Sequence record: MH494197.1
DNA length: 64,000 nt
Direction: 5' to 3' (one strand)
The notes under the pieces are model-generated. The model saw only the letters and a list, made by a program, of their open reading frames with translations, had not been told where the DNA came from and ran no database searches. This document shows positions 11,808-35,312 of this stretch, piece after piece (within the stretch, counting starts at the first letter, position 1; the number at the start of each line of letters is the position of its first letter). The translations under genes and the position numbers were made by a program.

Positions 11808-11981
11808 TTATTTCGTGAAAACAAGGGTTAGTACTGCATAGTACAAGTCATACGTATCTTTAGGGTTAATAGCACCTTTAATACATTCTTTCATTACTTC
11901 ATTATAGATAATTTTAGTACTGAATGTATTGGATGTTACTATATCGGAATTAAGGTACGAGAGGTAGAATTCTTTATACAT
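11808..11981 (-). CDS. KEFY-family protein
   Basis: The family start MYKEFYLSYL lies at 11981, inside ORF 11808-12044. Confidence 0.75.
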   Translation of the reverse strand: MYKEFYLSYLNSDIVTSNTFSTKIIYNEVMKECIKGAINPKDTYDLYYAVLTLVFTK

Positions 11982-12080
11982 AGTTTGAAATATACGTAAT
12001 GAGGTGATGAAATTTCTTATCAGTACTGATAAGTTCCTGTACATGTTTTGTTAGTTTGTACGCGTTTTATAGAGTCCGGA

Positions 12081-13207: not shown

Positions 13208-13393
13208 TTAGATTGCTATCAGTTTCAGTACTTCAATATATGTGCGGTACTCTGCTTTAATTAAATTTGTACACACTGTAAGGGAATTTCTTTGTATAAG
13301 TTTATTGCCGCTTTTATACGCATTTCTCCACACATAGAGATGAGATCTTTCAGGCATAGATAGTTTATTTGTATAGTACTCAAATGTATTCAT
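13208..13393 (-). CDS. KEFY-related protein (MNTFEYY subtype)
   Basis: Paralog of MNTFEYYFNKL at ~12825-13012; both end ...Y(I)(D/E)VLKLI. Confidence 0.75.
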   Translation of the reverse strand: MNTFEYYTNKLSMPERSHLYVWRNAYKSGNKLIQRNSLTVCTNLIKAEYRTYIEVLKLIAI

Positions 13394-13995
13394 ATATTAC
13401 CTCAAATAGAGATTAGTTTAAGTACTTCTCTGTATGTGTACTTTTCGTTTTGTGCATCTCTTGTGCTTGTATATAGGTATCCTCGACGATATTTGTTGCT
13501 CCCGTTCTTGTAGTTGAATTCGAACTTATTGTAGATGAATCTATCGCCGCTGTAATTTACTTAAGTACAATTCAATGCTCATAGTATTCTCTTTACATAT
13601 CAATAAGTTTCAGTACTGCTCTGTACGTGTACTTAGTTGTTAGTGCTTCTTTATAGCAATACAGAAGTAATGTTGTTTGTCTCTTATACTACCGCGTTTG
13701 TAGTACCATACATTGGAGTTGTGGGTGTACTTGTCCCTGTCGGATAGATTTTGGTAATAGTATAATATATGATTCATGGTAATGTAATTAGCCTTATTAT
13801 GTTAAAGTACTCGGTCCCCGTACACCTTGTAGAATATTATCAACTACATTTTCTTGGTGCAGGATTAATACATTCGGTGCGGTTCTTTTAAGGTTTTTAA
13901 AGTACTGTATTCTTGTTTAAGGATGAACTGTACATCTTTAGGGAGAATATCTAAGTAGTACTGGTGTATGTTCATAGTTTTCATATAGTACTCTT

Positions 13996-14181
13996 TTAGA
14001 ACTTAAAGATGAGGTTCATGATAGATAAGTACTTAGTTTCAGGAAATTGATGTTCTATTGCATAACGTGTCTCCAGTCTGAAGTCAAATTTATAAAAGGG
14101 ACTATTCATATCCATAGGTTCATTGGGAAATGAATCTCTGTATTGTTTGTGCAGCTTACTACAGTAGAATTCTTTATACAT
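13996..14181 (-). CDS. KEFY-family protein
   Basis: MYKEFYCSKL...YLSIMNLIFKF. Confidence 0.8.
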   Translation of the reverse strand: MYKEFYCSKLHKQYRDSFPNEPMDMNSPFYKFDFRLETRYAIEHQFPETKYLSIMNLIFKF

Positions 14182-14182
14182 A

Positions 14183-14395
14183 TTAGTGCTCGATTAAAAG
14201 GGTTAGGATGTAATAGTATTGCATACTTTCTACCCCTTGTACAGCATTTCTTATTTTATTATTCCTGTACGAGTTCAAGAGTTTAGGACAATGTTTGAAG
14301 TTTATATAATTATTTTGTGTATACAGTAGGCTTTCTCGTAGACCTTTTGTTGGTAGTGCATCGATGTAGTACTGTTCAATGTTCATAGTGTTCAT
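14183..14395 (-). CDS. KEFY-related protein
   Basis: MNIEQYYIDAL...YYYILTLLIEH. Confidence 0.75.
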   Translation of the reverse strand: MNTMNIEQYYIDALPTKGLRESLLYTQNNYINFKHCPKLLNSYRNNKIRNAVQGVESMQYYYILTLLIEH

Positions 14396-14719
14396 AGAGC
14401 TACCAGTACTAAGATTTTTGATAATTGTTTGTTTCTATCCCGCAGATGTTGTTGTGTAAAATGCTCACTACAAGGGTATCAAGTGCATTGTTCAGCATAA
14501 GGTTACATCCAGTACTGTTATATTTTTTAGCTCAATTAGCCACGAACAATCCGCGAGAAATTTCCCGTACTCTAGTTCATTTAGCGTATTAATGTAGTAC
14601 TTAAGTGCATTTGTCATGTACAGTTCTCCTTATATTCCTTCTATAGTACATCAGTACTGAAAGGTTGTCAAGGGTTTTCTTTTTGGGGTAAATATGATAT
14701 AATGAATAAAGGAGGAAAT

Positions 14720-15866
14720 ATGTTACCTTTTGTAAGAATGGTTAAGTACGGGAATATTGCACCAGTACCGAAAAAATAAAGAAAGTTATAGCAGGATATG
14801 ATAATTTATATGTACTATATGGTGATGGTTCGCTATATGGTTGTGGAATCAATAACTATCAACAGTTAAATATTGATGGAACTGCTACACAAAATAATTG
14901 GGTACTAATTACCAATGGTGTTAGTAATGCATGGGCTGGTGGATACAATATTTTATATTTGAAAGAAGATAAATTTATAATGCACGGAACTAATGTCTCA
15001 TTAGGTTTAGGAAATACTACAATTCCATTAGGTGGAGTAGATGTAACTTCTTCATTCCCAGATATCTCTAATATTAAAATGATATCCATTGGTTTTGATT
15101 CAATGCACTATGTTAGTGCTGATGGTACAACTGTATATGGAAGAGGTATGAACACAAATGGTTCTGTTGGTTCAGGTAGTACTTACTCACAGAGTACTTT
15201 CACTTCAGTACTGAATAATGGAACTAATCAGGTTATTGATATATTTGGTAACGTTAATAATACAGTGCTTCTAACATCGAATGGTGAGCTTCGAGCATGT
15301 GGGACAAGTGCTTATGGTTCTATAGGAAATGAAACTGGTAAGTGGACATCGTTTGGTTTAAAATTATCTGGCACTAAAATAATGGGTGGTAATGGGTATA
15401 GTACGCTTGCATATACAAATTCGGGAATGTACCACTCAGGGTGGCAGTTAAATGGGGAACTAGGAAATGGTTTAGATACTAACGTACAGGTATATCCATT
15501 TCAATTTAACTCTAAAACGATAGATAGCAAGATAGATAAAATTGCCAAATCATCATCTGGGTCATATGTTAACATGTACTCAACAACAGAAGGAAAGATA
15601 TATACGACAGGTTCGTTTGGTAAAACGGGTCAACTACTGCATTGAATTTGTTCACCAATACATTAACACTTATAAATTACAATCCAGATACCGCCTCGTT
15701 GTATACGTGCACAAACTTCAGTGTTGTGTATGATGGTAATGAAACTATTGCTGTAAGTGGTAGTCCTACATATGTACCGAGGGCGTTGCCGCTAATAGAT
15801 GGACTACAATTCCATTACCCAAGTAATACTATGCCAGTACTTGATGCTGGCTTTTCTTTTGATTAA
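14720..15866 (+). CDS. Leader-tagged RCC1/BLIP-II-like beta-propeller protein #1 (frameshifted)
   Basis: Hybrid leader MLPFVRMVKYGN; the body is closely similar to #13; LYGCGxN..QL and GWQLNGELGNG repeats. Confidence 0.8.
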
Positions 15867-15893
15867 ATATAGTATAATGAATAAGGAGGAATT

Positions 15894-17017
15894 ATGTTAC
15901 CTTTTGTTAGAATGTTTGATTATGGGAATATAATCGAAGTTAATAATATAAAGAAAAGTGTTGTTAGTTACACTCTTGAAATGTTTCTAATGCAAGATGG
16001 CACTGTATATGCACACGGTGAAGATTCAAACTATAATGCGGGTTTAAGTACACAGTTTGTATCGTTAGGAGCAGTTCAACAAATCACAACTGAAGTTGAT
16101 GACTTATGGTTAGGATCGTTTTCCGTTGTTATTAAAGGTGATAAAATATATGGTTCAGGTTCAACATATGCATTCACGAATTCTAATACTTTCCAACAAG
16201 GATATACTGACTGGGCTGTGTATTTCACTGGTATAGATGTTACCCAAATTAAAAAATGTTATGTGGTTATACAGCATTTATATTAATGAAAGACGGAACA
16301 CTTTATGGAAGAGGATGGAATCGAAGTGGTACATTAGGTTTAGGACATAAAAATTATGTTTCAGCGTGGACTGTACTTGACACTAATGTGGATAATATAT
16401 TTGGCGGTTACCTTGGCGATACATTGTTTAAGATTAAAAACGATGGAACTGTATATGGTTCAGGTTCAAATAACAGCTTTCAAGTTAAAGCAACATCGGG
16501 TGATGCAACCACATTTGTTCCGTTGTTTGATGATATATCTTATGATATAAAATGCAGTTTTGTTTCTGGTGTTGGTTTTGTAATGATAACATCTGATAAT
16601 AAAATATATGCAACTGGAACTACTTTTGCTGGTAGTGGTGCACATAGTAAAGTTTTTGATGTTGGTTTTACTATAGGTGATATGAGTAATATATATCATC
16701 CTGATTCGTTGGACTATTCGACTAGTGTTGTATTTTTAATTAATGCAGATACAAACAAACTAATAGCAACTGGGCATACCCATTTACGGAAGTAGTTCAA
16801 GTTCCTTCCATATTTTACAGCATTTCAAGAATTCAATTTTACATCGTTCAATTCGAATACACGATATAGTGGGTCTTTATACTGGAATACATTTTACGAA
16901 GGTAATAATGTATGGATGAATGGATATAATCCTGAAAATACGGGTGGAAAGAATTTCTCATTGTGTTCAATACCGTTAGATACTATTATTACTAAGCAAA
17001 TTGATTTACCTTTTTGA
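15894..17017 (+). CDS. Leader-tagged RCC1-like protein #2 (frameshifted)
   Basis: MLPFVRMFDYGN; LYGRGWNRSGTLGLG repeat. Confidence 0.8.
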
Positions 17018-17087
17018 ATACTATGCCAGTACTCAAGTACTGGCTTTTATTTTATTAAATATAGTATAATGAATAAAGGAGGGAAAT

Positions 17088-18273
17088 ATGTTACCTTTTG
17101 CAAGAATGGTTAAGTACGGGAATAAACAGCCTATTCCTGAACCAGTTGAGTTCACTGATGTTTTACAGCAACATTATACTAATGCTATGTATCTACATAA
17201 GCCCACGAATACACTATACGGTTATGGTGGTAATAACTTGAGCCAATTAGGTCTAGGGAATCAATCGACAGTTTCTACTTTTACAGTACTGGCAACGCAC
17301 TGTGCAGCCTTTTGGTTAGGCGTTCATGGCTCATTGATGATTGACTTGGATAATAGAATATATTTCACAGGGAATACAGTAGCATTCCCCGATTATGGAG
17401 ATGCAACTCCAGTTAATGGTTATTTTAGAACATGGACTGATGTTACTGCCGCATTTGACAAAATAAATGTACACGCTAATTTAATCAAGAGTGTACATAT
17501 AGGTGAAAGTACTAGAATATTACTACACGATGGAAGAGTAGTTGTTTGTGGTAAAATGCAAATGCCGAATGTGGAACAGGTAACCAAAATCCCATACCAG
17601 TACTAACAGTTGTTACTGGTATGGGTGAAGTTCTCAATTGGCGTGTTCATTACAGGGTACGCACTATCTCAAAACAAATAAAGAAGCATGGTTTTGTGGT
17701 AAGGATAACTTTGGTGAAAGTGGTGCTGGGACTAGCTCATACGTTTTACTAATAAGTTAATACGATCCAACGTCGATTATATAAGTGCTACTTATGATGT
17801 TACGGTGGTTCACTGCCGGTAGGGTGTACTGGAGTGGTAGAAACAATTCTGGACAAGCTGGGAATGGTACTACTTCAACCACAAACCAATTAACTACAGT
17901 TCAGAATTCACAGGTTATAGTGAATATTAGTGATGGTTTCCTGTGTCCTAGTAATATGGGTAACTCAACAATTGGTGCACCTATGGCTCAATACCCATCA
18001 TATGTCAGAGTGCAGGCATCAATACATATGGTCAAGAAGGGACGGAAATACAACAGTAATTACTTCGTGGGGGCGTTTTCTTTAAGTGCGATACAGGGTG
18101 GATATGACAATGTTCTTATGGCATCCAAAGACTGGTCCAGAACAATAATTATAACTAAAGATTATAAATTATATGCATGTGGGGGCTTTAACGGTTCAGG
18201 TGGTAACTTACCGGATGGTACTTCCGTAATTAAAACATTAACATTAATGCCAACGCAGTTATGGCAATCATAG
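17088..18273 (+). CDS. Leader-tagged RCC1-like protein #3 (frameshifted)
   Basis: MLPFARMVKYGN; LYGYGGNNLSQLGLG and YWSGRNNSGQAGNG repeats. Confidence 0.8.
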
Positions 18274-18282
18274 GAGAAAATC

Positions 18283-19404
18283 ATGTTACCTTTTGTTAGA
18301 ATGTTTGATTATGGAAATGAAGCACCTGATCCTAGTTCGGGATTTCGAATAATAAGTACAGGAGACGCATTACTATTAATTACTAAGAGTGGTGATTTGT
18401 GGGTGCGTGGTTATAACCGTTATGGCAAGTTAGGTATAGGTAATAACACCACTACCTATGTACTTGATTGGACGAAGGTTAGAAGTGATGTAAAGTTTGC
18501 GTGTGGTAGTGGATTGGTAACAGTTATCTTTACTAAGGGTAATCGCATATTGTACTGTGGTGACAAATGGTTTGAAACGGGTGGTGTTGGTAGTGCACAG
18601 ATTTTCACATGGACAGATGTTACGCACCAATTTGGGGCAGTAGATTTGAGTACAGTAAGGGATATGAAAATGTCTTATTACACGATTGGATTATTGACTA
18701 CTAATAATCAATTATACGCTAAGGGATATGATAATAACCTATCATTTGGTGGGGTTAGTAATAAGGCGACTGCTGTGTTTATTGCGAATAATGTACAAGA
18801 GTTGTATACGAGTTTAGTTAGTACAATCTACGTTGATACAAGTGGTATATTACATCGTTGTGGCATGAGTGATAACGGTTCGTTGGGTAATAATGTTAAT
18901 TTAACTTCGTATCTAAGTTATTCACAGACTGGTATGACGATTAAGGACATTGGAATGATGACTACGAACACTGGGTTATTATATACTGATTCTAGTGCAC
19001 GCACGAGATATTTTATTGCTGGACAGAACTTGAATAAACAGATGGGTAATGCGGCGGCTGCGAGTGCCATTACGAGTACTTACACAGAGCTTTCTGGTAG
19101 TGTTGATAAGTTTTCTTCTTTATGGGCGAATGATGGGATATTGATGACATTTGCTGTGGGTAAGAACACTAATCAGTTATTTTATGCTGGGATGAATACT
19201 TTTCATGCGAGTGGTGGTGTATCTTCATATGCGGATACATATGAGTTAGTCCCGATGGTGTTTAATGACATACAGGAAGTGTTATGTGCACAGCGTTTAT
19301 CGGTGGTACATGATTCTACGAAGTGGTATTACTGTGGTGATGCTAATTCAATGTATGGTTTACCGGACGTAAGTACTTTTACTGAGTTACCGTTGCCCTT
19401 TTAA
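18283..19404 (+). CDS. Leader-tagged RCC1-like protein #4 (intact, 373 aa)
   Basis: MLPFVRMFDYGN; LWVRGYNRYGKLGIG and LHRCGMSDNGSLG repeats. Confidence 0.9.
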   Translation: MLPFVRMFDYGNEAPDPSSGFRIISTGDALLLITKSGDLWVRGYNRYGKLGIGNNTTTYVLDWTKVRSDVKFACGSGLVTVIFTKGNRILYCGDKWFETGGVGSAQIFTWTDVTHQFGAVDLSTVRDMKMSYYTIGLLTTNNQLYAKGYDNNLSFGGVSNKATAVFIANNVQELYTSLVSTIYVDTSGILHRCGMSDNGSLGNNVNLTSYLSYSQTGMTIKDIGMMTTNTGLLYTDSSARTRYFIAGQNLNKQMGNAAAASAITSTYTELSGSVDKFSSLWANDGILMTFAVGKNTNQLFYAGMNTFHASGGVSSYADTYELVPMVFNDIQEVLCAQRLSVVHDSTKWYYCGDANSMYGLPDVSTFTELPLPF

Positions 19405-19476
19405 TAATAGGTCAGTACTGAAATATGTACTGGTATTTTTGTAAATACTATATAATTTAATTACGGAGATTTTATT

Positions 19477-20653
19477 ATGTTACCTTTTGTTAGAATGTTT
19501 GATTATGGGAACGTCGTTGAGCGACCTGTGGGTACACGTTATACCTGTAGTGACTATAGTGCGACTTATAGTTTAATAAAGGATGGTGTGTTATATGTAT
19601 CTGGGATGAATAACTATTATCAGTTAGGTAATAACACTAACGTAACACGTTACAACGAGTGGTTAAAAGTTCCAGAGACTGATAGTGTTAAGTTTTGTAG
19701 TACTGGTTATAGTCAGACAATGTATATTACTAACAATGGGAGGATAATGATAGCTGGTGAAGATCCTACTTCCAGTGCGACGGCGGTAAGTGTTAAGGTA
19801 TGGACTGATATAACTTCTAGATTTAGTGCAGTTGATACAAAGAAGATTGTTTATATTTCAATAGAACGCTTTGGTGTAATGATGATCATGCAAGATGGTT
19901 CAGTATGGGCGTGTGGAGTTGATAATACTGGTTGGAGTGGGCAGGAAGTAAAACTGTTGGTTTCTTTACTTTCAGACAAATATACACCGGAAGTGCAGGA
20001 AGTGCAGTTGCTGGTACTGCTGGTACTGGTACTGCGAGAATTCTGTTAGCTAATGGAACAATCTTGTCCGCTGGTACTAATACATATCATCAATGTAATG
20101 CTAGTACTGATCCGGCTGTTCTAACATTCACTGAATCATTCCACGGGTTGATCCTTCATTGATATATCAAATCAAGATGTGTAATAACAACTGTATTATA
20201 TTTTGAGTGATAAGAGATATTACGGTACTGGCTGGGAAGTTTTGGTGCATTGGGTGATGGTGATATTACGGGTTCGAATAATAAATTCTATGCAGGTACA
20301 TTGTCAGTTGCTCCTAAAACATGCGTGCTTATATGTCGTATCTATGTAGTTCTTCTGGGGATTCTAGTATGTACATAGGCGATGATAATTTCATATACAC
20401 CTGCGGTTATCGTGGGAGGAACTTAATAAATGCCACTACAGATATTGGTACGTTCACGAAATGCATTCAAAGTGCACAAGGATACAAGAATGGACTTATA
20501 TATAGTGGGAATTATTGTGCTGTAGTTTTTGATCCAGATTTGGGTTCAGGAATGTCATATGCGGTTTCATCACCAAAATTGAATGCACCAGCACCACAGG
20601 CGAGTGTTCCAACATTGGGTATGAGTTCGTTACAAGCTATTATTTTACCATAA
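19477..20653 (+). CDS. Leader-tagged RCC1-like protein #5 (frameshifted)
   Basis: MLPFVRMFDYGN; LYVSGMNNYYQLG repeat. Confidence 0.8.
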
Positions 20654-20726
20654 CATTATACCAGTACTGAAATATGTGCTGGTATTTTTTTAAATACATT
20701 ATAATTATTATATGGAGATTTTAGTT

Positions 20727-21851
20727 ATGTTACCTTTTGTAAGAATGTTTGATTATGGGAATACAGTGGCTGCTCCCACTGGTATAAAGGATTTCAAGCA
20801 AATGGAAGCCACTGTATGGCACTAACATATAGTGGTGAGATGTGGGCTTATGGTACAAGTACAAGTGGATCAATGGGAACCGGATTCACGGTGGGTGCTG
20901 CTGATAAGGGTTGGTACAAGTCTAACATTAGTAATGTTAAATCATTCAGTTCTAATATGCAGACTAGCACAGTGGCTTTGACAAATGATGATAGAGTGCT
21001 AGTTTGTGGCTCAACTAGATTTGACAAATTCAGTACTCCAGATATTGCATCATCTAACCTTGATTGGTTGGATGTTACTGATCATATTCCACAGGAAGTT
21101 ATTGATGCTGGGATGAAGCAAGTTATTAACCACGTATATTATGTTGCCATTTTACTGAAAACAATCTATTATATAGTGTGGCATTATCTTTGGGTAATAC
21201 TAGTACTATAATAGATAGAACATGGAGAAGAAATACATTTGGTGATATACAAGTTGAACGTGTTGTTTCGTTGACACAAACCCCAAGTGGTCCTTTGTGT
21301 ATAGTTCAAGATGCAGACGGATACCAGTATGGTATTGGATATAATGGTAATAAGATTATTGATAATACTTCCACTAATTCATATTCTGTATATACCAAAA
21401 TGGGTACACTTCCTTACAATGAATTTGCCATATCGAATAGCGGGAAATTCAGTTCAGCGGTATTATCAGATGGGAGAAGTGTTTATAGTGGTACATTTCC
21501 AAAGTCATTCAATAATAGTTTTGGTTCATTTTGAAAGTTGGTGCGGTATCAGATACTGTGTTTGGTTTAGATGCAAAAATATGCGTGGTCAATATGGTCA
21601 AAATCAATTACCAATTGCGTCGGCTGATAACAATGCAAGTAATGGCGTTGTGAACCTTCGTAATGTTCCAGCGGGAACACAAACGAAAGACATTCGATTT
21701 ATATGCGGAAATGATGTAAAGAACGTTTATATCATATACACAAATGAAGACGGCATTAGCTCATTTTATGGATTGGGACCAAACTTTGATCAAAATTCCT
21801 CAACATATGCACAATTCGTCAAAGTGGATTTGCGGGGCATTATCAAATTAA
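20727..21851 (+). CDS. Leader-tagged RCC1-like protein #6 (frameshifted)
   Basis: atgttaccttttgtaagaatgtttgattatgggaat at 20727; MWAYGTSTSGSMGTG repeat. Confidence 0.75.
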
Positions 21852-21861
21852 GGAGAGAAAT

Positions 21862-22960
21862 ATGTTACCTTTTGTTAGATTGTTTGATTATGGGAATATC
21901 ACACGGTCCTAAAAATATAATTAAAGTTGGTGCTTCTACACAGGGTCAATTCTTATTGACAGATTCACATGATTTATATTACATAGGTAGAAATCAAGGT
22001 GGTGAATCTGGAAATGGAAATACCAACACAGTATCCTCATGGATATTAGTAAGTACAGATGTTTCTAATTTTTTCGTGGGTGATCGTACACTTGTTATTA
22101 TTAAAAATGATAATACGATATGGTCATCAGGTCAAACGTACTGGTTCACATCTTCCACAACTACTTCTTACAGTACTGTATTAGTTGATAGAACCAGTTG
22201 GTTTACCAATGCCATACCAGTAAGTGAAATTGCTGATATAGTATGTTCGTATGGTTTAATATTTGTACTTAGCACTAGTTCAGTACTCTATGGTGCAGGG
22301 CTAATGGATATCGTGGTGCTTTAGGTATTGGTTCATCATCAATTTACACATTAACTCAATGTGCTACTAATGTGCGTAAAGTAATGACGAATGCAAATGA
22401 CAGTATGTATATTACATTAGATAATAAGTTATATAGTTCTGGGTGGAATGACCGTGGATTACATGGCACAGGAACAGAACACAAGTTAACATTTGGGGAC
22501 TGCGTAGTTCTGGTGTAATAGATGCAGCTATTGGTGGACATACACTCAATTACTATAATGGTACATCATATTTCACATGTGGTACAACTCCAAACTTTCT
22601 TAGTTCAGATTCAACTACATTCAAAGCAGTTCCTGTAAGTACTTTACCTAATAATTCACCTTTGTTTATGACAAATTCAGAGGCAACAAGCACGGCTACG
22701 CAAATTATATTAACTAGTGCATATCAGAAAGGTATTGGAAACCGTGGTTTGGGATTAAACAATTCTCAAACGGTGCTATCTATAGTGCTGCTAATTTACA
22801 ATTACCTGTAGAAGTTAGTGAGATTAGTGATGTTGCTTTTAGTGACGGATTAACATCATTATTAACCAAAGACGGAATGTATATAGTACTGGATCGTATT
22901 ACGCCATTCCGTGCAAGTGCAGATGTTGCAGTCTTTACTAAAATTGATTTACCAAAATAA
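21862..22960 (+). CDS. Leader-tagged RCC1-like protein #7 (frameshifted)
   Basis: Leader MLPFVRLFDYGN at 21862; LYYIGRNQGGESGNG repeat. Confidence 0.75.
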
Positions 22961-23028
22961 CATAATGCCAGTACTTGATACTGGCTTTTCTTTGGTTAAA
23001 TATAGTATAATGAATAAAGGAGGGAATT

Positions 23029-24198
23029 ATGTTACCTTTTGCAAGAATGGTTAAGTACGGGAATATTGCACCTGTTCGCCCTGAAATAAAGAAATTGGAT
23101 GGTAGTCAATTACATGTCGGATTACTATATAGTACTGGTAATATGTATATGCGTGGTTCTGGTTCGAACTACAAGTTAGGTACAGGTGATGCTAGTGATG
23201 TATTAGATGGTTGGGTACATGTACCCTATGAAGTTGATGATTTTTGGGCGTGTGTGTCCGGTACATTAATAAAGACTAAAGACAATAAGTTATATTGTGC
23301 AGGACTATACATGGGTGGATATTTTGGTGCTAGTGGTTCATATGTTAACTGGACTGAAGTAACTTCATTATTTGTGGGTATTAACGTCTCACAAATAAAG
23401 AATATAGAATTTACATCAGCGAGTACTTCCGGTAGTACACTAATATTGATGTTAGATGGTAGTTTATATGGGTTCGGTATGAACAGTAGGTCGGAGTTAG
23501 GTGTTAATAACAAAGTCGTATCTCCTATTCTTATAGATACTGGGGTAAGTTCAATAGGAGCACATAAATTAGGTGGTTCATCGTTCCATTATATAAAAGA
23601 CGGTAAGTACTACAGATGTGGGACCGCGATTGGTAGTAATATAGGAAGTTCTTCTTTAACTACATTTACTGAATTGAGTATTGCTGATAATGTTATATCT
23701 ATGCAAATATTATTTGACAACGTACAGTTATTATGTTTTGGTAGTACTGGATATAGTATCTATATGGCTGGTTCTAATGATTATGGTGGAAGAGGTGTTG
23801 GTGGTAGTACTGTTTACACTACATTCAGGAAAATAGATCTTACTGGATTTGGTGTTGTTCCCAGTGAAATACTATTTGAAAATGCAGGGAATGGTTATGT
23901 TAATATATCAACTGATAGTACTGGCATATATACATGTGGTGGTGGTGCTGGTGTTAATGGTTTAGGTAGACCGAGTAATGTTATATCAAGTTCACAGTTG
24001 GGTTTGATTGAGTTCAGTACAGGATTATACCCAGCAAATATAAGTCGTGTATTTTCACAGAGTTCATCTTCTGTTATATATTGTATAGTTAATAATGAAT
24101 TGTACTGGGCTGGGAGTAATTCATATTTTACTGATCAAACTACAAATACTGGTACACAATTTTCATTTATTAAGATGAAGGATATGCCTTCTGCTTAG
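23029..24198 (+). CDS. Leader-tagged RCC1-like protein #8 (intact, 389 aa)
   Basis: MLPFARMVKYGN; MYMRGSGSNYKLGTG and LYGFGMNSRSELG repeats. Confidence 0.9.
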   Translation: MLPFARMVKYGNIAPVRPEIKKLDGSQLHVGLLYSTGNMYMRGSGSNYKLGTGDASDVLDGWVHVPYEVDDFWACVSGTLIKTKDNKLYCAGLYMGGYFGASGSYVNWTEVTSLFVGINVSQIKNIEFTSASTSGSTLILMLDGSLYGFGMNSRSELGVNNKVVSPILIDTGVSSIGAHKLGGSSFHYIKDGKYYRCGTAIGSNIGSSSLTTFTELSIADNVISMQILFDNVQLLCFGSTGYSIYMAGSNDYGGRGVGGSTVYTTFRKIDLTGFGVVPSEILFENAGNGYVNISTDSTGIYTCGGGAGVNGLGRPSNVISSSQLGLIEFSTGLYPANISRVFSQSSSSVIYCIVNNELYWAGSNSYFTDQTTNTGTQFSFIKMKDMPSA

Positions 24199-24265
24199 AT
24201 TTTATGCCAGTACTCTGTACTGGCATTTCTTTATTAAATATAGTATAATGAATAAAGGAGGAAAT

Positions 24266-25420
24266 ATGTTACCTTTTGTAAGAATGTTTGATTATGGGAA
24301 TGAAGCACCTGTGCCAGTTGGTATAAAGATGGTAAAAGTTTTACAGAATAATGTGTTTATTTTATTAGAAGACGGAAGATTATATGGCAGAGGGCATAAT
24401 TTTTACTATCAATTAGGTACTGGTAGTAGTTCTCCTACTATAGTTGAAGAGTGGGTTTTATGTTTAACTGATGTAAAGGAATTTTGGACTACTGGTGATA
24501 CACAAGGAATATTAGTACGTAAAAATGATGGCACATGGTGGAGTACTGGTACTCAAATCTATCGTGGTGTTAATACTACTTATCGTGTATGGACAGAAAT
24601 ACTTGGTATTTTTAATGATGTGAATGACACATATAGTAAAATAGTTATAGGAAGCGGCGTTACATTATTATTAACAATAGATAATAAATTATATAAGATG
24701 GGTGACAATAACAACGGTGAAGTTTTACTGGGGCTGTTGGTCAAAGAGTATCAGTACTGACATTGACACCAGAAGTTAATGTTAAAGATATTGGTGTAAC
24801 CGCGAATAATGCTTCATTTGTATTATACAATGATGGAACATTAAAGTACAGTGGGAATAAATCTAGTATTGGTTCGACTGGTACGACTAGTACAACTCCC
24901 ACATTGACTACTGTTACTACTGGAGTATTACAGATAAATTCGGAAAATGCATATAGTGCTAATTACGTATTAAAGAGTGATGGGCTATATGTATTCGGTT
25001 CACAAATAGATGGACAGTTGGGTGATGGCACTGATGGCACTATTAACAGTCTTAGAACAATCACAAAGATACCAGCTTCTAGTATTCCTAGTACTGCTAT
25101 TGATTACATAGGTGGTTCTAATTTTGAAGCACACGTTAGAGCAGGTGGTATATGGTATTTCGCTGGGCGTGGAAACGCTTCTGGAGATGGAATAACGAAC
25201 TCTAATGTTATTAAAACATGGCGTGCATGTACTAATATAACTGAACCAGTTCCATATGATAAAATGACACATGGTTATATGATAACATTCATGTTAAAAA
25301 CGGTGAATTATATGGTTCAGGGAATGGTGGTAGAACTGCTGGTATGGGTACAATTCCGTATGAAGAAGAAAATGCCGGAAATACAGGATTATTTAAAAAA
25401 TAGTTACACCGAGTTAAAAT
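24266..25420 (+). CDS. Leader-tagged RCC1-like protein #9 (frameshifted)
   Basis: MLPFVRMFDYGN; LYGRGHNFYYQLGTG and LYVFGSQIDGQLGDG repeats. Confidence 0.8.
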
Positions 25421-25488
25421 TAAAAGCCAGTACTCTGTACTGGCATTTCTTTGTATTAAATATAGTATAATGAATAAAGGAGGGAATT

Positions 25489-26626
25489 ATGTTACCTTTT
25501 GCAAGAATGGTTAAGTACGGGAATATTGCACCAGTTCCGGTAGTTCCTACAATAAAAGATTTTAAGATTGGATTTTCACATGAAGTGTTATTGGACAGTG
25601 CAGGTGATGTATGGGGTATTGGATACAATACAGATGGGCAGTTGGCTTTTTGGATGCAAACACCAATTCATTAGGTGCGTGGTCTAAGATATATACTGAT
25701 GTTCGATTAATTGGAGTTACTGCTAGATATACAGTGGTAGTTACTAATAATAATAGAATACTATACGCAGGAAATAACTTAATTTCTAGTACTACCACTC
25801 TTGGGTGGACCGATATAACTACCAGTATGGGTCCGGTTGCGGTGGATAGCATCGATGCATTATATTGTACAGAGGGTATGATGCATATTAAAACTTCAGA
25901 TGGTTCTTTATATGCATATGGTCGTAACATGAACGCAAACAGTGGTGTTACTGGTGGTGTTATTAGTGTTGCAACTAAGGTTAATTTGCCTTCTGCTGTA
26001 AATGACATGCGATATACGTTTAGTTATGGTTCAGTACTATGTAGATTGGATACGACTTCTATATACGCATGGGGACGAAACATAAATGGTGAATTAGGTC
26101 AGGGTAATGCAACAGCCATTGTTACTCCAAAACTATTGTCTGGTTCTTCTATTGCAATGGGTACTTCGTATAATGCTACTGCAATTGTTTCTGGTTCTGC
26201 ATTGTTGCTTACATGTGGTGGACAAAACAGTGGGCAGTTAGGTAATGGTATTACAACTGATGGTAATGTATACACCTTTGGTGTCAGGACATACCAGCGA
26301 TCTTAATACAATAAGAAGTCCAGTGGATTGCAGTACAACGTACACCTCTGCATTTATGAGTCCAGATGGTATATATTACACTGGTGCTAACCGAAGTATG
26401 TTTGGTGGTATTAGTGGTGGTGCTACCGTTGGAATATATACTAAATGTAGTGATTTACCAATAACATATTCTAATATAATTCAGTGGAGTAGTGGTACTA
26501 TTGGTGGTGCTATATGTAGTAGTACAGAGTTATACCAATGTGGTATAGGTAGATACATTGCTGGTGATGGTGCGAGCACAACCGTATGGATTTAGGAAGA
26601 CACCATTACCTTGGGATACTTATTGA
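25489..26626 (+). CDS. Leader-tagged RCC1-like protein #10 (frameshifted)
   Basis: MLPFARMVKYGN; IYAWGRNINGELGQG and TCGGQNSGQLGNG repeats. Confidence 0.8.
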
Positions 26627-26695
26627 CATTACGCCAGTACTTGATACTGGCTTTTCTTTTGATTAAATATAGTATAATGAATAAAGGAGGGAATT

Positions 26696-27884
26696 ATGTT
26701 ACCTTTTGTTAGAATGTTTGATTATGGGAATATCACACCTGAACCTCTTCAAATTAAGAAAATAATACCAACTGATACTGAGGTTGTTGTACTTTATACC
26801 GACGGTCAACTATACGCACGAGGCAGTAATAGTTATGGGAAGTTTGGTAGAGGAAATAATAATGCAGTAAGGTCGTGGACATTAATTAGAGAAAATGTCA
26901 AAGATTGCTGGATGACACAAGGAACTTTGTTAGTTCAAGATAAGGACTTAAATTATTTTTATTGTGGATATGGTAGTCATATTGGTTTAGAAACTAGTAC
27001 TACATCATTTTTAAGTTATAACCAATATATTGAAAATTTGTACACACAAAGTTCAGGTACTTCAATTAAACAGATGTATGCAGGTACTACTTGGTTTACT
27101 TTCTTAATGGATAATAATACAATATGGAGTACTGGTTGGAGTGGGGCTAGACAATTCGCTGATGGTACTGGTAGTACTCAACAAATAACAGATGGATCAT
27201 TTGTAAAAGCTGTCACGCCTAATGTTGATATTGCACGAATACAGTCAACAAATAGCTGTGTAATGTTTTATGATACACAAAATAATTTATATATTGGTGG
27301 TAGTACATCAGGTATAAGTACTACTGATACATGGACTCCATACAATCAATATACTTTATATCAGCCAAGTACAACATATACAAAAACATTACAATATGTT
27401 GTATGTACAATTGGTGCAGTCAGTGCTTTAGTGGAGAATCCAAGTACAGGAGCACGTCAGTTCCTAGTGGGTGGGAACGCCAATAATGGGGCATGGGGTA
27501 ATAACACTACGTCTAGTACAGCACGAGCAGTATTAGGAAATAATAGTACAACCTTACCACCGTACTTTGTATTCAATTCATACTGGATACCCAGCACAAT
27601 CTAGTATACTAGTTACGAGTTCTGGTGTATATGCAACAGGTTTAAATGCGAGTAGTTATGCTGGTTCATTGGGTGTTGGTTCTAATGTTACCATTGGTAA
27701 ATTTACTGCATGTCCATTGCCGTCAGAAATAACATATTCTATGTATGATAAAATAAAAATATATCGAGGGTCGTTACGTACTTTCCTAACTGCTGATATG
27801 AAAAATATATATTCAACCGGAACTTATGATGATGGTGGTCCTAGTACAAATAGATATGTACTGGATACACCTAGACAATTGTAA
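26696..27884 (+). CDS. Leader-tagged RCC1-like protein #11 (one frameshift)
   Basis: MLPFVRMFDYGN; LYARGSNSYGKFGRG repeat. Confidence 0.85.
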
Positions 27885-27948
27885 AAAAGCCAGTATCAAG
27901 TACTGGCTTTTCTTTGTTAAATATAGTATAATGAATAAAGGAGGAATT

Positions 27949-28683
27949 ATGTTACCTTTTGCTAGAATGGTTAAGTACGGGAATAAAATTGAATATAAGC
28001 CACATGGTGAACAATTAATCACGACAATAGGAACAACACAATTTACAGTTCCTGCTGGCGTTACCGAAATATCAGTATGTGTTATTTCGCCGGTGGTCAA
28101 CGTGGTGCTGGCGGCGGCTTATCGTGGCGTAATAATATTCCGGTTTCTGGTGGTGAGTACTTAAGTGTTTCTCTTACATCCCAACACTACTACAGCAGTT
28201 GAAAACGGTTTATATCGTGGAACTGAAAAACTATGTGTTAGCTTCACTGGTGCATATACGGTTGGTGGACTAGGTGGAAAAGCTGCTAACGCTATTAATG
28301 ATGGTGGTGGTAATGGTGGCAACACTGGTTTAAGTGGTGGTGCAGTCATTGGTGGTGGTGCTGGTGGCTACACTGGTAAAGGTGGTAACGGAAATGCAAT
28401 CACTGGTGAAAATGGTGCTGGGGGCGGCGGTGGTGGTGGTGCATTCTATAATACCTCGTTCATTGGTACGGGTGGTGGTACTGGTATCATTGTTCAAGGT
28501 GCTAATGGTATTGGTGGTAGCTACGATGGTTCATATAATGGTGGTGCTGGTAGTGGTGGTGCTGGTAATAGGTATGGTGGTGGTGGTAGTATATGGGATA
28601 ATTCTTCTTATACGGCGGCTGGTGGTGGTGCTGTGCGAATAATATGGGGACGTGGGAGATATTATCCTAATAATTCAGTCTAA
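27949..28683 (+). CDS. Leader-tagged glycine-rich protein #12 (not a propeller)
   Basis: MLPFARMVKYGN, then FTVPAGVTEISVCVI and GGxG-rich repeats ending GGGAVRIIWG, typical of Gly-rich domains on phage fibre/structural proteins. Confidence 0.8.
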
Positions 28684-28752
28684 AATATAGGCCAGTACTT
28701 GATACTGGCTTTTCTTTGAATTAAATATAGTATAATGAATAAAGGAGGAAAT

Positions 28753-29866
28753 ATGTTACCTTTTGTTAGAATGTTTGATTACGGGAATATTGCACCTGAA
28801 GCTCCAAAGATAAAGAAAGTACTGTGCGGTCTTGATAATTTGTACGTCCTCTATGACGATGGCTCACTTTATGGTTGTGGGGTTAATTCGTATTTTCAGT
28901 TAAACGTTACAAATACAGCAACAAGAAATACTTGGATATTAATTTCAGAAGGTGTTACTGATGCATGGGCTGGGGCGTACAATATTCTTTATATCAAGGG
29001 TGAAGAATTCATAATGCATGGAGTTACCACACAATTAGGCACAGGAAATACTATGATTCCGTTGGGTGGTTTGAATGTTACTTCTTCATTTCCACATATA
29101 TCTAATATTAAAATGATATCAATCGGTGCAGATACAATGCACTACGTTGATGCTAGTGGTTCGATTGTTTATGGTAGAGGCATGAATGGTAACTATTCAC
29201 TCGGTGGTGGGTATTCCACGGCTCAGAGTACTTTTGTTTCAGTTATTAATACCGGAGCTAATACAGTCCTTGATATATTGGGTACACAGAATAACACATT
29301 AATATTAACATCAAATGGTGAACTTCTCGGTTGTGGGAGTAGTGAGTATGGCTCACTTGGCGTAAGTCAAGGACAGTATACTACACTAGTAAGCAGGTTA
29401 ACCAGTGTTAAACTGTTTGGTGGTAACAGTACTGGTACTCTTGCTTATTCAGCCAGCAATATATACAACGCAGGTTGGCAGTATGTTGGTCAACTTGGTA
29501 ACGGTATTACAACGAACACACTAGTATATCCATTTGCATTTAACTCCACTACTATTGATAGTAACATACATAAAATATCAAAATCAAGTACATCTTCACG
29601 TGTTAATATGTACGCAACAACCGAAGGAAAGATATATAGTACTGGTGAATTTGGTAGAAATGGTTCTGGTGGTAGTTTGAGTAGATTCACCAATACACTA
29701 ACTTTAGATAATTACAACCCAGAAAAATCAGCATTATACACATGTGCACATTTTAGTATAGTATTTGATGGTAATAATCAAATTTATGCTTGTGGTTCTT
29801 TTTGTATGTGCGTTCTATTACCACGAACTCATGGTCTGCAATTACAATGCCGAAATGATACTATAA
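28753..29866 (+). CDS. Leader-tagged RCC1-like protein #13
   Basis: MLPFVRMFDYGN; nearly intact, close paralog of #1. A late indel lets the ORF track run to 29907. Confidence 0.85.
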
Positions 29867-29936
29867 AACTATGCCAGTACTTGATGCTGGCATTTCTTTT
29901 GTATTAAATATAGTATAATGAATAAAGGAGGAAAAT

Positions 29937-31070
29937 ATGTTACCTTTTGCAAGAATGGTTAAGTACGGAAATAAAAGACCATCTAATAATATCAAAAGAT
30001 TTCATGTACAACCAATAACAGTGTTTTGGTGCTCACCGAAAGTGGAGATTTGTATGGTTTTGGATTCAATTCAGGTGGTGAACTTGGCACTGGTGCAAAA
30101 CTAGTGTTACTTCAGTTATTCAAATTGACACTGGAGTTGATGATGTATGGGGTGGTAGTCTATGTGCAATGTACAGAAAAGGCGATGAATTCTTTGGCAG
30201 CGGGACGGTTCTTATTATGGTTCAAGTGCTGTTAACTCAACCACATTTGTAAATGTAACACACATATTCCAAGATATAGATATTCTTAATATTAAGAAAA
30301 TTAAAATGACAACAGGTTTGTTTATATTAATGCAAAACGGCAACTTATATGGATGTGGGGTAAACACCAATTGTCAATTTGGTACTGGTGAGGCAGTGAA
30401 TTTTCGTTATCCTATAGCTACATTAACACAAACGGATGTTGTTGATTTTGATATTTTAGGAAACTCTAGTATAATATTAAAGACCGATGGGTACATGTAC
30501 AGTGCGGGTGATAATGGTCGTGGACAACTTGGTAGTTCTACTGCAACCACACTTCTGGTATATACACAAATTAGTAAATTTCCAAACGTAACCAATTTGG
30601 ATCTGTTCGGACACTCACAAGTTACTTCATTATTCAAAGATAGTGATGGTAAAACGTGGTTGAGTGGTAATAGTTATGGTATTGATTACCCAGTAGTAGC
30701 TACAACATTATTCAGTAAAGAAGCACCAGTACCTGAAGGTACATTTCGTTTTATCAACACAAGGGCAGGGTCAAATACACCAATAATATGTACACCCACT
30801 GGGTATTATGTTGCTGGTACTAACCCTTATGGTGCATATGGTATAGGTACGAATGTAACTCTGACAACATTCACAAGAATGGATTCTATGGATAGATACA
30901 TATCTGATTATAATAATGTTCCTGTTTTCGATGGATGTTTCTATGGGACATATTTTGCAGTTGGGGAACGTCTGTTTGGTGCAGGTAATGGTAATACTGG
31001 TAATGTTCCGGATATACTGGATCACAGCGTAACTATGTGGAAATTAATTATAAAAATAATTAAACCTTAA
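29937..31070 (+). CDS. Leader-tagged RCC1-like protein #14 (frameshifted)
   Basis: MLPFARMVKYGN at 29937; MYSAGDNGRGQLG and LYGCGVNTNCQFGTG repeats. Confidence 0.8.
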
Positions 31071-31138
31071 TACTATGCCAGTACTTGATACTGGCTTTTC
31101 TTTGGTTAAATATAGTATAAAGAATAAAGGAGGGAATT

Positions 31139-32308
31139 ATGTTACCTTTTGCTAGAATGGTTAAGTACGGGAATACTATACCCAAACCCGCTGGTGTGAA
31201 GAAAATTAGTACTTCCATTAATCACGTTGGGATGTTATTCGATAATGGAAATTTATATCTACGTGGGGTGGTGGTGAGTATAAGTTAGGAAATGACAGTA
31301 CTGGATTCGTACAGAATGGTTGGGTTAAGTGTCCATATAGCGTTGCTGATGTTTGGTGCTTCACTTACGCGACAATTATACTTACTACAAGTGGTGAATT
31401 ATACTTAGCTGGACAATTGGGTTATGTTGGTGTAGTTGCAGCGAGCGTACGGATGGACTAATATTACATCTAATTTATCCTCAATACCTGCACTTAGTAC
31501 TATACAAAACATAGCTTATACTGAGACTACAATTTACAATGGTGCTATATTAATTTTGTTAAGCAACGGGGACTTATATGGTATAGGTCGTAATGGTGGT
31601 GGTGTATTAGGCGTTTCTGGAATCCAATCAACTGCACTTAAGATTGACACAGGTGTTACTTTAATTGCTGGCACAGACCGTTCAGCGGCGTTACATTATG
31701 TGAAAAATGGTCAATACTACAGATGTGGGAATAATTCTCGCTACAACCTAGGAACAAGCTCTTCTGTTTTATCTACATTTACGGTAAGTACAGATATCAC
31801 AGGAACCGTACTGGGATTGCATGTACTACAAATGCGACTTCAGTACTGACATCATATAATGGTACTATTAGAGTGTATAGTGCTGGGACGAATACCGATT
31901 ATACGTTAGGTATTGGTTATGGAGATACCAGTATAATAATGAGTCCATTTAGTGCTACACCTCCAATTTATGGTATTGTACCAGATGCGGCATCACTGAA
32001 TAATTCTTGTATTAATTCTAATATGATTGCGATGACACAGGGTGGTAAATTGTATACATGTGGTAATGGTGTTGCTCTTGGTAGAGAAATCACTGCATCG
32101 ACACCTAGAACGGCGTACTATCCAGTACTATTTGAGGATTCAAATACTGCACTTGATGTTAATGCTTTTGCAGTGCAGGGGGTTCCGGTGTGTTATACGC
32201 ATTAGTGGGGGCAAATGAGGTTTACTGGTGTGGTAGTGGTTCTATGTTCCGGAACAGAGTGCAGGTACACAACAAGTTAAAATGAAGAAAATGATTTTAC
32301 CAGAATAG
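31139..32308 (+). CDS. Leader-tagged RCC1-like protein #15 (frameshifted; paralog of #8)
   Basis: MLPFARMVKYGN at 31139; LYGIGRNGGGVLG and YYRCGNNSRYNLG repeats. Confidence 0.8.
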
Positions 32309-32317
32309 GAGGAAAAT

Positions 32318-33449
32318 ATGTTACCTTTTGCAAGAATGGTTAAGTACGGGAATATAAAAGTAAAGAGTACTATCCAAAAAGTTATCCTTGGTGGTGGTGG
32401 TCAATGTGTGGTAACATTACTCAGTGATGGTAGAGTGTATGGACGTGGATACAATACAACATATGGGTTGGGTACTGGTACAACAACATTCGTAAGTGAT
32501 TGGGTATTAATGGGCGATAATATTGTTGATATCCATTCAAATGGTGTTACTGGCACATTCCTTATTACCAAAGAAAATAGAATTTTGTATTCTGGTTTTG
32601 CGACACCAATCAATGGCACAACATCACATTATACACGTTTCACTGATTTAACATCAACTGTATTTGCTGCGGTGGATGTTAGTAATATTAAAACAATTAC
32701 GGGAAATGGTAATGTTACAATGGTTCTTTTGAATGATGGTTCACTTTATGGGAGTGCAAATACAGGGTTATAGGTAATGGTAGTAACGTTGCATTATCAA
32801 CACAAACATATGTGACTAATGATGTGCGTGATGTGAAAACATATCCATCAATGAACACTATAACAAAAATAATAATCAAATATTGGCTAGTGGTATTTTA
32901 TACCAAGGCGTGAACGGTACAAATTCATCAATAAACACGTCTTCATATACATTACTGTACACATTACCGAGTTCTGATTGTTTTCAATTTGCATTTGATA
33001 CATATACATTTGGATATGTTGACCCTAGTACTAACACTTCTTATATAAGAGGTATACCAATAAATGGTTCATTAGGTAATGGCGTTACTAATAATACAGC
33101 AGTTACAACATGGGTTACTAAAGTTTGGAATACACCAATTGATAGTTCTATACCTAATAAATCATATACAACTAACCATGTCTCCTTGTTCAATGATGGA
33201 AACTTATGGACAACTGGTGCATCTAGTGTCGGCTATTCCAATGGTACAAATAGCACAACAGCTAATACATGGACCAGTTCATCTAATTTACCATTCAACA
33301 CTAATAACATAACAGACTATGCTTTTGGTGGTAGTATTACTGTGGTGGTAATCGACTATAGGACTATGTACATACTAGCTAACAACGCCATTGCTGGTAC
33401 TGCTACGACAACTTATAAATTTGAGCCATATAATTCTCCACCAGTTTAA
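32318..33449 (+). CDS. Leader-tagged RCC1-like protein #16 (frameshifted)
   Basis: MLPFARMVKYGN; VYGRGYNTTYGLGTG repeat. Confidence 0.8.
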
Positions 33450-33479
33450 TATAATGCCAGTACTATGTACTGGCTTTCT

Positions 33480-34205: not shown

Positions 34206-35268
34206 ATGTTACCTTTCGTATTGTTATTTGATTATGGGAACGAAAAACAAGAAAGTTCTTATGATGTTAGTGTATATGGAAACAATAACTACATTTTAAA
34301 TAAACAAACTGGAAACCTTTTTGCATCCGGTGCTGCGCATTCATGGGTGATAACACAGTTAAGTATTATATTACCCAAATAGAATCAAATGTTCATAGCT
34401 GTGAGATAGGTTTCCTATCATCATGGATAATTAAGAAGGACAAAACTGTTTTCATTTTAGGAAACAAAAGCAGTATTGGATTAACTGATTCGACAACATC
34501 ATGGTTCGAAATTACAAACTTATTTTCTGCTGTTCCTGAAATATGGGACAACCTATTTGAATGTAAAGTTCAATTGGGATATAACTGCATACGTGTTATG
34601 ACACCACTAGGATCAATATATGCGATTGGTACAAACACTTATGGTGCATTGGGTACTGGTACTACATCCTCATCCACTTCGTTCGTTAAAAGTGGTGCTG
34701 TGGATGCTGTACGCATGGAATCAACAGAACGTTCAGTGTTCTATCAAAACAGTTCTGGACAATGGTTTGGATGTGGTGATAACACATATGGTATACTAGG
34801 TCTAGGAACTACCGCTAGTCGTGTAAACTCATACACCGCACCAGTATGGACTAATGCAGAAGCTGTTAGCTTCTCTAACCGTGGATCATATACAGCCTCA
34901 ATGGTACTCTATACTCATGTGGTGACAAAGTTAATGGTCAGCTAGGGATGGATATACACAAAGCATAGACGCTGCCGAGCACACCATACACCATAGGAAC
35001 CGCATTCCAAATTGGTAAGGCAATAACATCAGCTACACAAGCATCAGCCAACGTATTCATTGGTAAAGATAATAAGTTCTATGGTACTGGTAGTATTGCT
35101 GCTGGTATAAATGGTAGTACTAGTGCTGCATTAAGTAAAGTTACTGCGTTATCAGCATCACTACCACCTGACATTACATACAATGATATTATATCATTTA
35201 ATACAGGGACCGTAACTTTTATTCAAGCAAAGGACAACTATATTATGTTGGTAGAAGAACTTACATAG
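34206..35268 (+). CDS. Leader-tagged RCC1-like protein #17 (degenerate leader, frameshifted)
   Basis: MLPFVLLFDYGN at 34206; IYAIGTNTYGALGTG and WFGCGDNTYGILGLG repeats. Confidence 0.75.
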
Positions 35269-35312
35269 ATAATAGTTCAGACGTTACCACACAGTTCAGT
35301 GTAATTGGTGGA

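Follow-up and report, generated by a model that had tools for sequence, protein, structure and literature searches.

Seventeen tandem genes on the plus strand of Escherichia phage CMSTMSU begin with the same 12-residue peptide, MLPFxRMxxYGN (M-L-P-F-x-R-M/L-x-x-Y-G-N), which we refer to as the tag, with the remainder of each protein referred to as the body. The genes, numbered #1 to #17 in order, start between positions 14720 and 34206 of the 64,000-nucleotide (nt) stretch of DNA that was analyzed (the window), which matches the CMSTMSU record MH494197.1 at 100% identity, with window base 1 being record base 124001. CMSTMSU, which infects E. coli, belongs to the Asteriusvirus jumbo phages of the 121Q/PBECO4/RaK2-like group. 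We found the tag to be modular: it heads bodies of several kinds, its sequence class is incongruent with the body tree, it has been swapped in patches whose ends could be mapped, and homologs of the tagged proteins in other phages have been shown to be virion proteins. The explanation we consider probable, if well short of certain, is that the tag is a modular virion-incorporation or address peptide on binding-module proteins, carried in a terminator-promoter cassette resembling the promoter-early stem-loop (PeSL) elements of T4-type phages, where tags and bodies are exchanged.

The shared tag and the bodies behind it

In the protein alignment, seven of the 12 tag columns are invariant (M1, P3, F4, R6, Y10, G11, and N12), and the bodies average ~24% identity. 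The shared part ends at residue 12, or loosely at residue 23. Variation within the tag falls at positions 5, 8, and 9, with positions 8-9 reading VK, IK, LK, MN, LS, FD, LE, FE, and others across relatives; if the peptide were helical, these three positions would lie on one face. The motif occurs 17 times in the full record of CMSTMSU, 15 times in that of phage fEgEco12, and 11 times in that of phage 121Q, in all cases inside this array only.

The bodies that follow the tag in Asteriusvirus genomes are RCC1-like, Kelch, and glycine-rich, with the phages BF17 and Turkey3 carrying the tag on Kelch propellers. Pectobacterium phage CBB has a cluster of nine tagged genes, with Kelch, LamG, and other bodies, and further carriers of the tag are Serratia phage BF, Xanthomonas phage XbC2, Salmonella phage 7t3, and phage GAP32. 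A pattern scan of IMG/VR retrieved the tag almost only from contigs of 348-378 kb, and one of these, a 366-kb uncultivated virus genome (L035), has nine clustered tagged genes whose bodies are four RCC1, four LamG, and one Kelch. Nearly all of the tags in this contig read A-R-I-S/V-K (mostly A-R-I-S-K), and Ser8 is reached through both the AGY and the TCN codon families, which points to selection on that position within that genome. Two further IMG/VR matches of 20 kb continue the motif differently, on a protein of 548 aa, and seem to be due to chance. Across genera, the tag residues are kept while their synonymous codons vary, which argues against the tag being an RNA-level signal.

The RCC1-like nature of most bodies was supported by both sequence searches and predicted structures. 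The body of #13 scored 38.3 bits against PF13540 (cut-off 22), and the RCC1 bodies matched PF25390 with E values of 1e-12 to 2e-24, yet under the gathering score, and phrog_4219 with E values of 1e-55 to 1e-82. AlphaFold2 models of #8 and #4, carrying a K and a D, respectively, at tag position 9, reached predicted template modeling (TM) scores of 0.84 and 0.79, and the best Foldseek matches, obtained with the former model, were UVR8, RPGR, HERC, and RCC1 (E down to 7e-20, TM 0.67-0.76, with ~0.75 for UVR8, RPGR, and RCC1), so that the bodies are predicted to be RCC1-like seven-bladed propellers. In both models, the first strand begins at residue 20-21, and the tag has a predicted local distance difference test score of 55 and 34, respectively. 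The glycine-rich protein encoded by #12 retrieved no Pfam match. As an observation from another phage family, Escherichia phage W70 (Vequintavirinae, rV5-like) has two adjacent RCC1-like genes (L011:1501-3606) that begin with a different shared N-terminus, MLEMLNL, which may be a parallel tag system.

Tagged proteins have counterparts in the virions of relatives. Eight RCC1-like proteins were detected in phAPEC6 virions by mass spectrometry (PMC7247149), and all eight carry tags with K at position 9 according to our sequence check. Mass spectrometry of CBB virions (PMC5259590) detected seven of the nine tagged proteins, so that proteins with E, Q, or K at tag position 9 stand side by side in these particles. 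The same publication reports GAP32 gp001, counted here as an RCC1-like protein and not as a tagged one, as structural by mass spectrometry (PMC5259590). Tail hairs or fibers are present on both phAPEC6 and CBB, and in phAPEC6 they are also present on the head; phAPEC6 additionally has an inner body.

The RCC1-like array, its multiple copies, and the presence of its products in virions have already been published. The arrays of RCC1-like "DNA condensation proteins" in 121Q, PBECO4, and phAPEC6 are the same gene family at the same locus as the CMSTMSU array. This name, with its implication of guanine-nucleotide exchange or chromatin binding, is annotation carry-over only, and no support for either activity was found in this analysis or in the literature on the relatives examined. 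A literature search for the tag motif retrieved nothing relevant, and, as far as the literature on these phages is searchable, it makes no mention of the shared N-terminal tag, of its spread to Kelch, LamG, and glycine-rich bodies, or of the incongruence between tags and bodies.

The array, its cassettes, and the quality of the record

The array is listed below by window position, with "broken" denoting a gene that is frameshifted in the record; several gene ends are approximate and are marked so. Tags are given from position 5 to position 10.

14688..14719, plus strand: promoter-like element and Shine-Dalgarno sequence before #1; first cassette, without hairpin
14720..15830, plus strand: gene #1, RCC1-like, mixed tag VRMVKY; broken by a 1-nt loss near +57; end approximate
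15833..15893, plus strand: cassette before #2, with hairpin, T run, promoter-like element, and Shine-Dalgarno sequence
15894..17020, plus strand: gene #2, RCC1-like, tag VRMFDY; broken; end approximate
17025..17087, plus strand: cassette before #3
17088..18273, plus strand: gene #3, RCC1-like, tag ARMVKY; broken
18283..19404, plus strand: gene #4, RCC1-like, tag VRMFDY; intact, 373 aa; without cassette, directly behind #3
19411..19476, plus strand: variant cassette before #5
19477..20653, plus strand: gene #5, RCC1-like, tag VRMFDY; broken
20658..20726, plus strand: variant cassette before #6
20727..21851, plus strand: gene #6, tag VRMFDY; broken; end approximate
21862..22960, plus strand: gene #7, RCC1-like, tag VRLFDY; broken; without cassette; end approximate
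22967..23028, plus strand: cassette before #8
23029..24198, plus strand: gene #8, predicted RCC1-like seven-bladed propeller, tag ARMVKY; intact, 389 aa
24204..24265, plus strand: cassette before #9
24266..25420, plus strand: gene #9, RCC1-like, tag VRMFDY; broken; end approximate
25426..25488, plus strand: cassette before #10
25489..26631, plus strand: gene #10, RCC1-like, tag ARMVKY; broken; end approximate
26633..26695, plus strand: cassette before #11; hairpin of -10.2 kcal/mol, z -4.7
26696..27884, plus strand: gene #11, RCC1-like, tag VRMFDY; broken
27885..27948, plus strand: cassette before #12
27949..28683, plus strand: gene #12, glycine-rich and not RCC1, tag ARMVKY; broken; intact ortholog 245 aa
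28689..28752, plus strand: cassette before #13
28753..29907, plus strand: gene #13, RCC1-like, tag VRMFDY with K-type TAC; frameshift near 3' end; orthologs 369 aa
29871..29936, plus strand: cassette before #14
29937..31070, plus strand: gene #14, RCC1-like, tag ARMVKY; broken
31077..31138, plus strand: cassette before #15
31139..32305, plus strand: gene #15, RCC1-like, tag ARMVKY; broken; end approximate
32318..33449, plus strand: gene #16, RCC1-like, tag ARMVKY; broken; without cassette
33456..33474, plus strand: terminator-like hairpin closing the main block
34206..35330, plus strand: gene #17, RCC1-like, outlying tag VLLFDY; broken; end approximate

A near-identical upstream unit, the cassette, precedes 12 of the genes, with #5 and #6 having a variant form. 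Its order is a GC-rich hairpin, a T run, a promoter-like TAAATA..TATAAT element, then AAAGGAGG, and then the ATG. The hairpin and T run are the putative terminator of the preceding gene, and terminator-like sites numbered 21 against 8.9 expected. Of this unit, #1 has just the promoter part; #4, #7, and #16 lie directly behind the previous gene, and #17 lies on its own behind a minus-strand gene, yet all four of these genes without a cassette keep the tag. In CMSTMSU, the copies barely differ in nucleotide sequence over the tag and the 60 nt before it. No -35 hexamer was found 16-18 nt from TATAAT in the cassette, and a sigma-70 consensus scan returned 80 promoter-like sites against 97 expected, which is no excess. 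Of the 13 genome-wide matches to the promoter-like element in fEgEco12, 12 lie inside the array. Since a sigma-70 -35 box is missing and the genes encode virion proteins, the cassette promoter is probably not early. The TAAATA part is similar to the late motif ATAAATA described for CBB and GAP32, although this is a resemblance only.

In T4-type phages, PeSL elements are promoter-terminator units at which related phages differ (PMC2839356, PMC4122927). The CMSTMSU cassette is similar in being a repeated intergenic stem-loop terminator with a promoter that flanks variable genes and marks sites of insertion, deletion, or replacement between relatives, and, as with PeSL elements, gene order and content change from phage to phage cassette by cassette, with the upstream context switching at the cassette or the tag. 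In contrast to PeSL elements, the cassette has no sigma-70 -35 box, the homologs of the array genes encode virion proteins, homology continues into the coding region as the tag, and several exchanges end in the tag or linker and not in the hairpin.

The record itself is of poor quality and is flagged UNVERIFIED_ORG. The window 1-64000 as a whole is poor in long open reading frames (ORFs), the longest being 395 aa and coding ORFs of at least 150 aa covering 29%, and 15 of the 17 array genes are frameshifted, leaving only #4 and #8 intact. An alternative genetic code was considered and rejected as the cause, as no stop-codon reassignment restores long ORFs and the breaks are indels. The same locus in relatives holds intact arrays of 370-400-aa genes, and the broken CMSTMSU genes, with the exceptions of #2 and #15, still align over their full length to orthologs at 91-99.6% nt identity. 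We compared contigs of four public sequencing runs, including a small 2018 run (X2) that is the probable source run, with window 14600-20500. The X2 contigs showed no substitutions and 1-4 gaps per contig relative to the record, the contigs of all four runs have an extra A after 17552 in gene #3, and gene #1 in the record has lost one A from an A run near +57. Since run contigs carry bases missing from the record without substitutions, the breaks in the array genes look like record errors, mostly homopolymer indels. With the record riddled with indels, gene-level reading of CMSTMSU is therefore better done on relatives such as fEgEco12 or BF17.

Several further observations concern the content of the array and its surroundings. 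At window 14740, X2 contigs run on after ...AGAATG with ATGAATTATGGAAATAAA, reading M-N-Y-G-N-K, a tag version found in no gene of the record, which may belong to a paralog missing from the assembly or to a second phage in the sample. No close orthologs of the #2 and #15 bodies were found among the seven compared Asteriusvirus genomes, #15 having a distant relative only. The #2 body recurs near-unchanged in manure and wastewater metagenome runs and, being found there and not in the compared isolates, indicates that the pool of bodies is larger than isolates show. In 121Q (gene 235, L004:8018-8242; also L006:14262), representing the phages whose tags have only K at position 9, the last array gene starts with MLPFGRIITSSK, a decayed tag without Y-G-N, and it occupies the place that the outlying VLLFDY gene (#17) has in the phages with D-bearing tags. 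As a candidate partner gene beside the array, the minus-strand neighbor in fEgEco12 was rejected, since it shows no relation to the DUF1190 gene that lies next to the CBB cluster. Immediately upstream of the tagged array, at window 9600-14617 on the minus strand, lies a packed, divergently oriented array of genes of ~60-70 aa.

Exchange between tags and bodies

A reading of the window made from its sequence alone had proposed that crossovers occur inside the tag and cassette, so that bodies are exchanged behind the tag, and comparison of tags with bodies across phages bears this out. In a maximum-likelihood tree of 100 bodies with residues 1-24 removed, tag class (K-type for tags such as ARMVKY, D-type for tags such as VRMFDY) changes at least 17 times, of which at least nine changes are forced by well-supported branches. 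A single clade of D-tagged bodies was rejected by the approximately unbiased test (P = 6e-34), at a cost of 4195 log-likelihood units. Tag class is thus incongruent with the body tree, and constant co-segregation of the tag with body lineage, which had been named as an outcome that would count against exchange, is not seen.

Pairs of orthologs with bodies at least 93% identical (n = 137) locate the exchanges more closely. Tag class differs in 30 of the 137 pairs, and in those 30 the mismatch rate per site is highest in the linker (nt 37-60; 0.272), followed by the tag (0.167), and drops to 0.028 in the body (nt 61-360), with mismatches clustering at nt 14-62. Between Turkey3_3809 and phAPEC6_4958, only about nt -12 to +57 differs and both flanks are near-identical; between Turkey3_17378 and WPEC3_27499, the bodies are identical and the tags, linkers, and upstream neighbors differ. 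The 3' ends of the exchanged patches map to +25, +33, +41, +48, +54-57, and +62, and with ends from +25 onward, some exchanges must have ended inside the tag. Tag class is also replaced within orthologous groups, with #7 orthologs in 121Q and phAPEC6 having K-type tags and #11 orthologs in phAPEC6 and SHEFM2K having MN-type tags. The codon for the tyrosine at position 10 is linked to tag class (TAT in 40 D-type tags, TAC in 29 K-type tags), and six chimeras combine D with TAC, four of them in the orthologous group of #13.

Two genes of CMSTMSU have mixed tags. In #1, the 5' part of the tag is identical to that of #9 and the 3' part to that of #10, as the sequence-only reading had it, and its body is indeed the sister paralog of #13 in the tree, at ~70% nt identity. 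The further proposal that #1 is a crossover hybrid fares less well: its mixed tag is real, but no crossover is needed to produce it, since it lies one base (GCA to GTA) from the A form (ARMVKY). The identical mixed tag is found in the fEgEco12 and WPEC3 orthologs, whose bodies are 99.6% identical, and being shared by three phages it must be inherited and old. Orthologs of #1 in Turkey3 and SHEFM2K have a G..LK tag, with eight differences in the first 51 nt against ~5% in the body, a pattern that makes it likely that the #1 tag was partly overwritten by standard K-type sequence. For codon 5 (GTA), a D-type donor and a single base change fit equally well, making #1 by itself weak evidence for exchange. 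In #13, TTTGAT is followed by the K-type TAC, as described, and its K-clade orthologs, including those in 121Q and phAPEC6, have K tags and an identical linker. Its sequence thus presents #13 as a genuine mosaic in which a D core sits in a K frame, in line with the earlier suspicion.

A record that is unverified, has 15 of 17 array genes frameshifted, and lacks bases carried by four runs raises the question of whether errors of sequencing or assembly produced the mixed tags of #1 and #13, a case that the sequence-only reading had itself named as fatal to its view of #1. However, the same mixed tags are present in the independently sequenced fEgEco12 and WPEC3 for #1 and in fEgEco12, Turkey3, and BF17 for #13, and the errors of the record are indels and not substitutions (no other letters and 1-4 gaps in the X2 contigs). 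The artefact explanation is already refuted by these orthologs, and we give it practically no credence.

The two tag versions and the role of the tag

The sequence-only reading described two tag alleles, ARMVKY and VRMFDY, that strictly alternate from #8 to #14 (A, V, A, V, A, V, A), and as a description of the sequence this is exact. Two main versions do exist; to call them two alleles is a simplification, as they are the commonest states of the three tolerant positions 5, 8, and 9. Likewise, the alternation is present in the sequence and is not beyond chance in CMSTMSU when tag labels are permuted (longest alternating run of at least 8, P = 0.056; at least 11 transitions, P = 0.157). In fEgEco12, where the tags alternate nine times in a row, it is nominally significant (P 0.006-0.017), and in Turkey3, BF17, and WPEC3 it is not; the five arrays share ancestry, and the tests are hence not independent. 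Alternation remains unproven. A two-gene duplication unit of one K-type and one D-type gene was rejected as its cause, as K- and D-tagged bodies interleave on the tree. That the VK and FD versions represent two haplotypes, at the nucleotide level, of the tolerant positions, copied among paralogs by short-patch recombination (gene conversion or crossover), has been shown in part.

In the explanation we favor, that of a virion-incorporation or address peptide, each array protein would consist of a shared 12-residue N-terminal peptide and a variable body, RCC1-like or glycine-rich here and also Kelch or LamG in relatives. The peptide, lying outside the folded body, would bring these proteins into the virion by docking on one shared partner, for which we lean toward the surface hairs or fibers, with packaging inside the head as the alternative. 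The cassette and the tag codons together would give ~100 nt of homology, through which related phages may have gained, lost, reordered, and re-tagged bodies. Alternative receptor-binding heads that share a conserved N-terminal anchor plugging into a common virion structure are familiar from CBA120-like phages and the K64-1/RaK2 depolymerases. The array is similar in having many interchangeable binding heads and one shared N-terminal part. In those multi-tailspike and branched-fiber systems, however, each anchor is a folded domain of ~100 or more residues, carried on a trimeric spike, whereas here 12 residues would dock monomer-like propellers; no folded anchor of at least ~100 residues is found, the shared part ending at residue 12 (loosely 23) and the propeller beginning at 20-21.

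Several points weigh against this explanation. The docking function, the location in the virion (surface fibers or inner body), and the class of the promoter are steps that we infer. The virion mass spectrometry data all come from relatives, with low peptide counts, and list proteins without their place in the particle. A short helix drawn at residues 3-10 by one AlphaFold2 model is a low-confidence prediction. The promoter-like element is private to the array and without a -35 box, so that its expression class is not readable from other genes. The clustered tag differences could partly reflect selection instead of conversion, as suggested by the two codon families that encode Ser8 in the 366-kb contig. 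Finally, since Logan contigs break at every cassette, contig data are unable to show live recombinants, and the recombinant joints seen in them are repeat effects and were discarded as evidence.

The tag could instead be a capsid-targeting sequence in the T4 sense, directing the proteins to the prohead core or inner body for ejection with the DNA and making the array an arsenal of injected host-directed binders. In T4, the internal proteins (IPI-III and the polymorphic IP loci) share only a short N-terminal capsid targeting sequence (PMC3012670). The two systems are alike in that a short N-terminal peptide is the sole common part of diverse, fast-evolving virion proteins in a plastic locus, and the tag likewise runs from Met1 over ~10-12 residues of unrelated virion proteins in a T4-related lineage, of which phAPEC6 has an inner body. 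In many relatives, positions 7-9 read [LIM]-x-E, resembling what we take to be the consensus of the T4 prohead protease site. However, the CMSTMSU tags have K or D at position 9, so that a Glu for removal by the prohead protease is found in none of them (VK or FD at 8-9) and E9 only in some relatives, by sequence check, and the Y-G-N that follows the putative cut site never varies, which would be unusual for a propeptide that is cut off. By eye, the sequences show no likeness, and whereas the T4 bodies are small basic proteins, the tag here heads large modules (25-45 kDa) of the propeller or lectin type, as is typical of surface binders. Hairs and fibers are borne on head and tail by phAPEC6 and CBB. 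We regard capsid targeting as possible but rather unlikely.

The model of the sequence-only reading, in which K- and D-type tags are functional alleles for two docking sites or form K/D charge pairs and the alternation reflects pairing, can draw on the roughly equal frequency of the two haplotypes in five phages, all with at least as many transitions as expected, on the ninefold alternation in fEgEco12, and on the genome-specific constraint at position 8 in the 366-kb contig. Nevertheless, FD tags are confined to CMSTMSU, fEgEco12, BF17, Turkey3, and WPEC3, and the three sister phages 121Q, phAPEC6, and SHEFM2K carry nothing but K-type tags; variants with E, Q, and K occur together in CBB virions; and a given body can stand behind either tag, depending on the phage. 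These three findings speak against K-D pairing being obligatory or two sites being required, K- and D-tagged bodies form no paired lineages, and in four of the five arrays the alternation is not significant. We found no support for heteropairs or two docking sites and consider the model improbable. A related idea, which the Ser8 constraint keeps alive and which we consider doubtful to a similar degree, is that positions 5, 8, and 9 form a genome-specific "dialect" read by a matching virion socket, with VK and FD being orthogonal and sorting interchangeable heads to two places, e.g., capsid-hexamer fibers and tail rings; a conversion patch of 15-60 nt that re-tags a body would then move it between places in the virion. 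Less probable still is a tag without any protein function, being either an RNA or DNA signal (in the translation start region or within the promoter cassette) or simply the strand with which the propeller begins. The near-identity of the tag and the upstream 60 nt in CMSTMSU would fit a nucleotide signal, and propellers often close with an N-terminal strand. However, the residues are kept across genera with codons free, the tag persists without the cassette, it heads LamG and glycine-rich bodies that are not propellers, and AlphaFold2 places it, with low confidence, before the first strand; a closing-strand role was rejected on this placement together with the non-propeller bodies. We regard absence of protein function as largely refuted and very unlikely.

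The two versions, their alternation, and the hybrid tag of #1 are mostly ordinary variation and of minor weight, and the tag itself is the more interesting result. It provides a direct handle on the make-up of virion proteins and hair-like fibers in RaK2-like jumbo phages across several genera, and it could be put to use for display or packaging in the manner of the T4 targeting sequence. The array, in turn, is a clean natural case of regulatory-cassette shuffling that reaches into the coding region, with address and cargo exchanged separately.

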